DNA from: Ranitomeya imitator
Taxonomy: Eukaryota
Length of the DNA: 64,000 nt
Reading direction: 5' to 3'
Assembly (NCBI RefSeq): GCF_032444005.1
Contig: NC_091286.1
Location: forward strand, 278,132,001 to 278,196,000
Under the pieces are notes generated by a model. The model worked only from the letters and a program-made list of their open reading frames with translations, did not search any database and was not told the DNA's origin. The position numbers and the translations under genes are program-made. Below are positions 57,661-60,530 of the stretch, piece by piece; within the stretch, counting starts at the first letter, position 1, and each line of letters starts with the position of its first letter.

Positions 57661-58896
57661 TGCACTGACCCACCTCCTTGTGCTAACCTCATGTCTTTGA
57701 TTAATATTTTATTTGCACCAAAGAGATGCCTTAAGTACAGGAGGATGATGCTAGAGTATTGGGCACTATTCACATGTTTGTTATTTTCATAGACATGAGC
57801 CTATTATAATCTATAGGTCTGTTCATTAATTTTTTTGCACACTGATTGTCCATGAAAAATGAGTCATGTTAATTTTTAATCCAATTTGCGCATTCAAGTG
57901 AATGAGTCTGTTTAAAAACATGAACAGTACTTGGATGTCATCCATGTGTTCTCCAGGAGCTGTCCAATTTTTTTTACTTTGTAAACAGGTATTCCCATCT
58001 CCAAGATCCAATCCCAATATATAGTTGGTTTAATAATAATAATAATAATAATAATATTAGCAAATAGCTCCAATTAGAAATGTAGTATAGTTCTTCTGTT
58101 TCGCTATGTTACTTACACATGTGCAGGCATTGCAGGACCTTAGATGTCCATTGTTACGACCACTCATACAGTGACAGTTAGTTGTTAGTGGTCGTAACCA
58201 TGGATACTTAAGGTCCTGCAATGTCTGAACATGAAGAAATGGACATAGCAAATCAGAAGATCTGTATTAAATTTCTAATTGAAGGTATTTTCTAATATTA
58301 TTATTACACTTACTGCCTATTGGTATAGGATCTTGGAGATGGGAATACGCCTTAAAGGCTTCATTTATACGTCCATCTTCTACCCATTTTTTTACTGACC
58401 AAAATGGATGAAAATTGGATCCAGCAGACTGTGAAAAATTATCATTTCTTTCTCTTACACCAAAAGAAAAAAAGATATCTGAATGAGGGGTTATCTGGAG
58501 AGTCAGCGCAGTTCTCTTTTTAATTTCAGACAAACCTAAATGACTACCCCTACAAATAGGCAAAGTAAAGGCTCCCAAATATGTGAGTTAGAAAAAAGGT
58601 TTTATAAATATGGGGTTTAAGCAGCAGAAATCTCACAATAGCTTACCATAGTAAAAAATGCCATATAGTGTTACAATAATGTCAATGAGTATCATTTCTC
58701 CTTGCGGAGATTGACATGCTAAGCATGCTGAGATGAGAAGACTTAAAGCTGCAATGCTCCTCTGGGAAATATGCAAATTATGCAAATTGTCTCTTCAAAG
58801 AGGAAGAGAACTAGAACTCTAGTGCCACCTTTTGGAAGTAGCAATCCTAACAGTGAATGTCGACTCTTTAATGAGCCTTGTCACATGACTTAGGAT

Positions 58897-58980
58897 TATA
58901 GCTAAACCAGAATCTCAATTTGCAGATACTGTGTTTCGGGGTACTGCCTCTCATCAGTGCAAAGTGGAGATCTGGTTTGG
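58897..58980 (-). ncRNA. Type I hammerhead ribozyme, mutated copy
   Basis: Minus strand CTGATGA-GAGG-CAGTA-CCCC-GAAACACAGTATC-TGCAAA; one mismatch each in helix II and helix III. Confidence 0.7.
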
Positions 58981-59058
58981 CTGTGTGAGAGGCGTCCAAC
59001 CGATATCCAAGAAGTATCGTTTCTCTTCTTGGATATCAGTCAGACGCCTCTCACACAG

Positions 59059-59137
59059 CCAAACCAGATCTCCACTTTGCACTGATGAGGGGCAGTACCC
59101 CGAAACACAGTGTCTGCAAATTGAGATTCTGGTTTGG
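59059..59137 (+). ncRNA. Type I hammerhead ribozyme with intact consensus core
   Basis: Helix I TTTGCA/TGCAAA, extended by ATCTC/GAGAT and CCAAACCAG/CTGGTTTGG; CTGATGA 59082-59088; helix II GGGG/CCCC; GAAA 59102-59105; helix III ACA/TGT; GTC triplet ending 59114. Confidence 0.92.
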
Positions 59138-60530
59138 TTATTATCCTGAGTCATGTGACAAGGATCGTTAAAGGGTCAACATTGACTTTTAGGATTGCTA
59201 CTTCCAATAGGTGGCAGTGAAGTTCTAGTCCTCTTCCTCTCTGAAGAGACAATTTGCATAATAATGTCAATAACATGCTGATAAAGCATAGTAGGCTAAG
59301 CTCACAGAAGCTTATAAAGAAGTACAAGCTTTATTCTGAAATCTCAGACGATTTTCATCAATGCTCATTTGTATGGAAACCATGTGCCATCCGTGTGTCC
59401 ATTATCTATGTCCGTGTATACATTATCTATGTCCGTGTGGCATCCGTGTGCCCATTATCTTTATGTCCGTGTGCCATCCGTGTGTCCATTATCTATGTCC
59501 GTGTGTGTGCTATCCGTGTGTCCATTATTTTCGCCTGTCTGCCATCCGTAATAATATATTAACATTTTAAAATGTACATGATCAAATTCAGTTCCCTAGG
59601 TTAATAATGGCAATGTATCTGTAAAAATTGACTGCAATATGGACGCTCTGTATAAGATCTGATGTTTTTTCTTTCTGTACATCCATAGACCTAGATAGGC
59701 AAGTCTCATCCAACTTACGGAAGATTTGGTCCAGGAAAAAAAACAGTACAATTGAATAACATTGGTCCTAGTGCTGTCGGTGCGGTGTGATGTCAGTCTT
59801 TTTACCCTCAAAATCTTCCAAAGAGCAATTTTTTATAGTTCTTTTATTTACTAGAATTTTTTTGCCCCTTTAATCTTTTATGCCACTCATAATAGTATTG
59901 ATTCTGCTTTATCCTCCCATTGGGTATCATTACAACTTTTAAACACTTTCTCTCTGACTACAGTATTACTAATTTATTCAACATTTTATTTATTCATTTT
60001 ATATCCAGCTGAAATTTTGCGTTATCCATGTTGTTTGCTTGACTTCAGTCATTTCATTACAAGATCACATAATATGCAAAGTTTGGACTGAGGTAAGGCT
60101 CTGTTCACAGTTAGTTTTTGCTTTCTGACAGATGTGTTTATTATGAATATTTTCTGGTACTGTATGCAACATTGGACTTTACTGTAGAAAAATGTATCTT
60201 GCACACTCTACGTGTATATGACTGCCCAGCATACTACAGTTTTCTCCACAGTGAAAAAAGGTAGGACGATAGGGTTGATACACTTATATGTGGTTAATAA
60301 ATGAGATGTGAACAGAGCCTGAAAATGCACAAATGTAGCAGCAAGCAATTGTTTTTTAACCCTGGGATTTTATAATGTTGCATTGTTTATCTGTAAAAGA
60401 CATATCTCTGAGGTAAGAAAGTGAAATAATTGTAGCTGCAGACTAAAGTAGAATATACACAGGACTTTTTATGTTATCTATACAGAAAATACATGATATC
60501 ACAGAGAAATGTATTTGTGCTATTCCACAG

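Follow-up and report, generated by a model that had tools for sequence, protein, structure and literature searches.

A probable non-LTR retrozyme insertion with two head-to-head repeat copies in VGLL2 intron 2 of Ranitomeya imitator

In a stretch of 64,000 nucleotides of the Ranitomeya imitator genome (NCBI RefSeq assembly GCF_032444005.1, contig NC_091286.1, positions 278,132,001 to 278,196,000 of the forward strand; hereafter the window), the second intron of the gene VGLL2 is interrupted by a short insert in which two copies of the same sequence face each other, both bearing the letters of a hammerhead ribozyme core. The locus raises two questions: to what kind of element does the insert belong, and how did two copies come to lie head to head? 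As to the first, we consider it a probable fossil insertion of a non-autonomous, non-coding hammerhead repeat, namely a non-long-terminal-repeat (non-LTR) retrozyme of the amphibian type with a unit of 325 nt. As to the second, both copies were inserted in one event, at a cut staggered by 12 nt, and their RNA 3′ ends point outward. The element is of an already described kind, of which this is a clean example, since anuran retrozymes and tandem or inverted insertions of Penelope-like elements have both been published. The novelty claimed for it in the initial annotation was therefore overstated, anuran retrozymes being on record (bioRxiv 10.64898/2026.07.22.740005).

A repeat scan delimited the insert to 573 bp (58687-59259) bounded by perfect 12-bp target site duplications (TSDs), exactly as had been annotated (Table 1). 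The TSD is 75% AT and the target AT-rich. The scan, combined with pairwise comparison, revealed inverted arms at 58777-59014 and 59025-59262, of 238 nt each, 91% complementary and separated by 10 nt. These 10 nt (59015-59024) had been described as a loop joining the two copies; they in fact open the minus-strand copy, which is thus 338 nt long. The head-to-head copy of ~235 nt on the plus strand was found as proposed (59025-59259). It is followed by an AAT common to the unit and the TSD and, counting AAT, it runs to unit position 248.

We then examined the ends of the minus-strand copy. Read from 59024, it starts with AGAAACGATACT and ends with AGAAATGATACT(C); 11 of 12 positions are identical, a match equalled by 0.2% of shuffles. 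This terminal redundancy is real but short. As the first 12 nt recur at the end of the copy, the left copy corresponds to one 325-nt unit plus ~13 nt, in agreement with the terminally redundant monomer of ~325 nt suggested at the outset. The unit has a GC content of 43% and contains no notable open reading frame (ORF), its longest stop-free stretch (86 codons) being at about chance level. A BLAST search with the arm detected no further copies of the unit in the 64-kb window besides the two arms.

Evidence for a repeat family was obtained from public Logan contigs of four runs, placed on 58300-59650 at a likeness of at least 85%. The initial annotation had staked its reading on other genomic copies, and two DNA runs, under organism labels A and B, yielded ~22,000 matching contigs each. 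Their summed depth reached 1e4-1e6 on the insert against 10-30 on its flanks, with the step exactly at the insert bounds, summed contig depth being no calibrated copy number. One contig (X5 record 25) matched 58319-58717 with zero differences, label B being the source species. In contigs of X1, X5 and X19 we observed joints going back by 325 nt, from 59019 to 58695 and from 59026 to 58702; equivalent joints run from 58688-58695 to 59025-59039. Hence, head-to-tail copies with a 325-nt period exist elsewhere, as the initial annotation had anticipated, and the joints confirm the unit period independently of the redundancy of the locus itself. Contigs of X15 and X19, two runs guessed to be RNA, also cover the family, and one of them has a 325-nt joint. 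Words of this stretch were in addition present under five or more other organism labels. Two more high-copy repeats flank the locus, at 58300-58391 (depth up to 1e5) and 59542-59633 (up to 4e3), compared with 10-30 for unique flanks. Just downstream of the insert, 59380-59500 is occupied by a short array of ~34-nt units, CCGTGTG(C/G)CATCCGTGTGTCCATTATCTATGT.

The hammerhead motifs were assessed against a core defined as CUGANGA, GAAA and a cleavage-site nucleotide that is not G after U. On the plus arm, this core reads CUGAUGA (59082-59088), GAAA (59102-59105) and GUC with its C at 59114. Helix II and its loop (59089-59101) consist of GGGG/CCCC, 4 bp, and loop CAGUA; helix III (59105-59113) of ACA/UGU, 3 bp, and a 3-nt loop, with GAA at 59102-59104; and helix I pairs 59059-59081 with 59115-59137, with 6 pairs, an internal loop, then 14 pairs. 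Helices II and III are thus loop-closed and helix I open, the layout of type I, and cleavage is predicted after C59114. An explicit type I descriptor found this motif as its sole match on both strands of the 64 kb, dinucleotide-shuffled windows giving 0.01 matches on average.

A hammerhead had been announced on both arms. This holds fully for the plus arm, where the motif is canonical, but the minus-arm motif is degenerate: the core letters are kept, while two stems are broken by mismatched pairs, A.C at 58949 (helix II) and C.A at 58927 (helix III). No well-supported alternative letters were seen among family contigs in 59025-59137, and T>C family variants at 58927 and 58949 restore both minus-arm pairs. 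Accordingly, the family consensus carries an intact hammerhead. The anuran retrozyme family postulated by the initial annotation is supported by a very abundant 325-nt repeat whose consensus has the intact hammerhead of the plus arm.

Because helix III is short, such a hammerhead would be expected to cut only as a dimer. In RNA folding, part of the hammerhead core was mispaired in the minimum-energy fold of the monomer, and two hammerhead RNAs were predicted to share helix III (ACAC.GUGU twice) at -68.2 versus 2 x -32.4 kcal/mol. The exact pattern of core and helix II was also sought in metagenome contigs: a first scan was empty and a second returned one contig only, L001. On this GC-rich microbial contig, positions 1577-1601 read CUGAUGA, GGGGCAGUACCCC, GAAAC, with the same core and helix II as in the frog, just upstream of an ORF. 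This motif may be a bacterial or phage hammerhead and is unrelated to the frog repeat beyond these 25-26 nt.

Table 1. Coordinates of the insert, its parts and the surrounding VGLL2 exons in the window
Feature	Position	Strand	Remarks
Left TSD, AATAATGTCAAT	58675-58686	none	12/12 identical direct repeat; single-copy contig depth stops here
Long arm	58687-59024	minus	338 nt = one 325-nt unit + ~13 nt of the next; RNA-sense 3′ end at 58687
Long-arm-only extension, unit 249-338	58687-58776	minus	90 nt, no partner on the right arm
Degenerate hammerhead, long arm	58902-58980	minus	Core letters kept; fails the type I descriptor
Short arm	59025-59259	plus	235 nt = unit 11-245; 91% identical to the long arm
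Canonical type I hammerhead	59059-59137	plus	Explicit descriptor; agrees with the family consensus
Right TSD, AATAATGTCAAT	59260-59271	none	Direct repeat; junction crossed by X1 record 8 (59192-59444)
VGLL2-like exon 1 (MSCLDVMYQ)	starts near 50634	plus	Fuzzy motif search
Tondu exon	53420-53680	plus	Pfam Vg_Tdu, 9e-21
Exon 3, begins SFPMSQRSFPPSFW	near 60551	plus	Fuzzy motif search

Non-LTR retrozymes, defined in 2020 (Cervera and de la Pena, PMC7229834), have non-coding units of ~170-400 nt with a GC content under 45-50% and a type I hammerhead (PMC7229834). A 325-nt unit with 43% GC falls within this range. Retrozymes were found in 7 of 7 amphibians sampled, 57 Xenopus families being related to the pseudo-LTRs (pLTRs) of Penelope-like elements, and the distinction between retrozyme and pLTR is described as largely one of degree (bioRxiv 10.64898/2026.07.22.740005). 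The amphibian representatives, that is newt satellite 2, axolotl Rtz331 and Rtz353 and the Xenopus families of Li, Clavereau and Pollet 2026, resemble the present repeat in their non-coding unit of ~320-350 nt, type I hammerhead with weak helix III, high copy number, head-to-tail copies and TSDs of >4 bp. Newt and axolotl hammerheads are reported as dimer-type (PMC7229834). Helix III of the axolotl Ax353 construct, ACACGUGU (PMC7229834), is one letter shorter than the ACAC(A)GUGU found here; likeness to published axolotl units was judged for the hammerhead only, and by eye. The locus differs from amphibian retrozyme arrays in being a single inverted pair. Head-to-head retrozyme insertions are not described in PMC7229834 or in bioRxiv 10.64898/2026.07.22.740005; the word 'inverted' is absent from the former and occurs once in the latter, in a reference title.

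The best-surviving alternative takes the 325-nt sequence for the 3′ pLTR of an autonomous Penelope-like element, so that the locus would represent an extremely 5′-truncated insertion together with its usual inverted copy. Indeed, most insertions of these elements are 5′-truncated, their pLTRs contain hammerheads, and a truncated copy in inverted orientation is often found next to them (PMC8557442), and 24 of 57 Xenopus retrozyme families match pLTR ends of Penelope-like elements in Repbase (bioRxiv 10.64898/2026.07.22.740005). However, the joints with a 325-nt period place units head to tail without an ORF between them, and the long arm, having run for 325 nt, passes the unit junction and continues. 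Its long helix I, interrupted by an internal loop, moreover marks the hammerhead as canonical and sets it apart from the minimal kind described for pLTRs, for which the motif at 48696-48738 may be compared. We thus regard this explanation as improbable. The motif used for comparison opens a 641-bp insert at 48681-49351 between 15-bp TSDs (TGGTGTTCTAGTCAT), which belongs to a family distinct from the 325-nt unit. This hammerhead-like motif is of the pLTR type and reads CUGACGA, GGAGC/GCUCC, GAAA, CGCGCG, UC.

Taking the insert as a retrozyme, how could it have been inserted in this form? Following the published model of the cycle, a master array would be transcribed, the transcript would be processed to unit-length RNA by the type I hammerhead acting as a dimer of two motifs, and a host ligase could circularise this RNA. 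A Penelope-like element would supply reverse transcriptase (RT) and GIY-YIG endonuclease. The enzyme would nick an AT-rich target on both strands, with the target 3′ ends priming cDNA.

Several features of the insert bear on this last step. The RNA-sense 3′ ends of both arms are outward and abut the TSD, so that each target 3′ end carries new DNA. Neither at the cleavage site (unit 100/101) nor at the unit junction (325/1) is the long arm interrupted, which shows that a circle or an uncleaved multimer, and not a self-cleaved monomer, served as template. Family contigs reaching 59260 run on with sequence resembling 58687-58776, indicating that the outer end of the short arm is peculiar to this copy. 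Two fixed RT start sites, as in the anole element, were considered and rejected, since contigs reaching this point mostly continue with family sequence.

Two routes would lead to the inversion. In route (i), priming would occur from both nicks; in the insert, the outer end of the long arm (unit 12-13 of the next round) does abut the inner end of the short arm (unit 11). Such abutment of outer and inner arm ends is a signature of twin priming. In route (ii), the cDNA would complete one lap of the 325-nt circle, stall ~13 nt beyond its own start and fold back on itself through a 10-nt loop (snap-back); it would then copy its own sequence as far as unit 245-248, and the other end would be captured via the AAT microhomology. 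Route (i) gives no reason why the long arm is so nearly one unit in length, and route (ii) gives none for the abutment. As these two coincidences are one fact seen from two sides, a single copy cannot separate the routes, and we give them roughly equal weight. The initial annotation had opted for twin-primed reverse transcription of a circular or multimeric RNA: this proposal is consistent with the single TSD, with the coordinates of the arms and with 3′ ends that face outward, but snap-back explains the inversion equally well. More specifically, the insertion coordinates might be the footprint of RT on a circular retrozyme RNA, with one lap, ~13 nt displaced and a snap-back, an idea that we consider unlikely but not negligible. 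If it were true across many insertions (n x 325 + ~13 nt, with in-register fold-backs), it would be the first direct evidence of a circle, as opposed to a linear multimer, as the template of Penelope-like enzymes.

A related layout is known from L1, whose 5′ inversions were reportedly attributed to twin priming by Ostertag and Kazazian in 2001. L1 inversions show the same single TSD round the composite, outward 3′ ends and junction microhomology, and the same abutment, here of unit 12-13 against unit 11 with a 2-3 nt overlap. Unlike L1 inversions, the present insert has no poly(A), and its template repeats every 325 nt; its coordinates therefore also fit a single run round a circle followed by snap-back.

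Resemblance to Penelope-like elements extends further. Their hallmarks include tandem or inverted insertions, an inverted 5′-truncated copy by the main copy and an extension at one end (PMC8557442), and a purified Penelope-like enzyme acts on both strands of AT-rich sites in vitro, cleaving and extending each (PMC11167929). The insertions of these elements (Evgen'ev and Arkhipova 2005; Craig et al. 2021; Frangieh et al. 2024) have the same inverted truncated neighbour copy, partial tandem, one-sided extension, AT-rich target and hammerhead, all within one TSD.

The window contains another composite insertion, 16448-19628, a single event with a 16-bp TSD (ATTTTTCGCGGGCTGA). Its insert (16464-19612) is a concatemer of ~5.06 tandem 437-bp units, 99% alike, followed by 2.16 inverted units. 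With arms 100% complementary over 946 nt, it is very young. We tried to extend either inversion route from this concatemer, and gave this up as its breakpoints suit neither simple rule.

A number of observations weigh against a retrozyme inserted by a Penelope-like enzyme. There is no tandem array at the locus, just 1.04 units and an inverted partial unit (0.72). Both junctions have ~3 nt of microhomology between target and template, while the anole enzyme is reported to start at sites non-homologous to the target. The one-sided extension measures 90 nt instead of the 30-40 nt 'tail' of Penelope-like elements, and the hammerhead differs from theirs in being canonical and not minimal. Autonomous Penelope-like elements have an RT/GIY-YIG ORF. 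None was found in the insert, nor was a Penelope-like ORF seen among window ORFs of at least 130 aa, the six largest of which, put to Pfam, gave only Ty3/gypsy. The concatemer at 16464-19612 shows neither the abutment nor an in-register fold-back, so that neither route is shown to be general. The possibly-RNA runs are guessed as such and are available as contigs only, which are unable to show circles. Finally, Rfam returned no hammerhead family at E<=1 for 2 kb or at E<=10 for slices of 111 and 53 nt, the sole hammerhead-named row being RAGATH-1-hammerhead (13.8 bits, E=3.9). Rfam being blank for both motifs, the hammerhead assignment rests on explicit features and not on a curated model. Strong Rfam rows for microRNA precursors (MIR533 and others) were discarded as artefacts of the 238-bp palindrome. 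The Ty3/gypsy-type retrotransposon ORFs lie at 663-4810 on the plus strand and encode gag, protease, RT, RNase H, integrase and a chromodomain.

We also estimated the age of the insertion. Comparison of the arms over 238 positions gave 21 differences (8.8%), of which 15 are transitions and 6 transversions. Twelve of these 21 differences could be polarised by family variants, 9 being derived in the long arm and 3 in the short, and the consensus was always kept by one of the arms. The right junction is spanned, at ~6% divergence, by X1 record 8 (label A). The insertion looks old because this contig from a related organism crosses the junction, with which the 8.8% arm divergence agrees; on the basis of this single contig, it appears older than the split between A and B. 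In anurans, 10% divergence corresponds to 30-100 million years (PMC12822217), and 4.4% per arm suggests an age of roughly 13-44 million years, assuming that the arms were identical at insertion.

The same divergence would be compatible with arms of unequal age, as the ages need not match if one arm had been inserted first and the inverted arm had arisen later at the DNA level, as an inverted duplication produced by repair or by template switching during replication. However, the outer end of the short arm meets the right TSD precisely (3 nt common), and its start lies in register 10 nt from the end of the long arm, two end points that a later duplication would need to meet by chance. One contig, furthermore, has the short arm beside the flank in the related organism. 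Such a two-step history is thus very improbable.

Is the insert used by its host? Exons 1 and 3 were located by fuzzy search with motifs that we take to be those of human VGLL2. Together with the Tondu exon they place the insert in intron 2, as annotated, with the exons near 50634, at 53420-53680 and near 60551 all on the plus strand and the intact hammerhead on the VGLL2 sense strand. Fold prediction gave the sense RNA of the insert as one long hairpin (-426 kcal/mol, z = -44). A host takeover, in which the sense ribozyme or the 238-bp hairpin would regulate VGLL2 through pre-mRNA cleavage, editing or small-RNA pathways, could draw on the strand of this hammerhead, on the stability of the hairpin and on an insertion apparently common to a related organism. 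Yet the 8.8% drift between the arms is transition-rich and typical of neutral decay, and an intronic repeat kept in two related organisms is a neutral expectation. In addition, the 238-bp hairpin in VGLL2 pre-mRNA would, according to the fold model, hide the intact ribozyme, and the short helix III requires a second copy. We give host takeover very little credence; most likely, the element does nothing at this locus.

Weakest of all, a fold-back DNA transposon or miniature inverted-repeat transposable element with 238-bp terminal inverted repeats would have a long inverted repeat and a TSD, but is scarcely credible here, given that the inverted repeat stops short of the left end and leaves 58687-58776 (90 nt) unpaired, that the two ends of the insert are different points of one unit, and that the family occurs as head-to-tail 325-nt repeats with a conserved hammerhead.

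The probable retrozyme in VGLL2 intron 2 thus adds a well-delimited, TSD-flanked case from another frog lineage to a described class. Its mechanistic value is modest and lies in an insertion short enough to place every breakpoint on the 325-nt unit. For VGLL2 itself the consequence is likely nil, apart from a long double-stranded hairpin in the intron 2 pre-mRNA. The head-to-head layout, known from Penelope-like elements, gives structural support to the phylogeny-based proposal that enzymes of these elements mobilise animal retrozymes; neither of the two retrozyme papers describes such insertions, so that the locus makes a small structural contribution to the case for mobilisation by Penelope-like enzymes.

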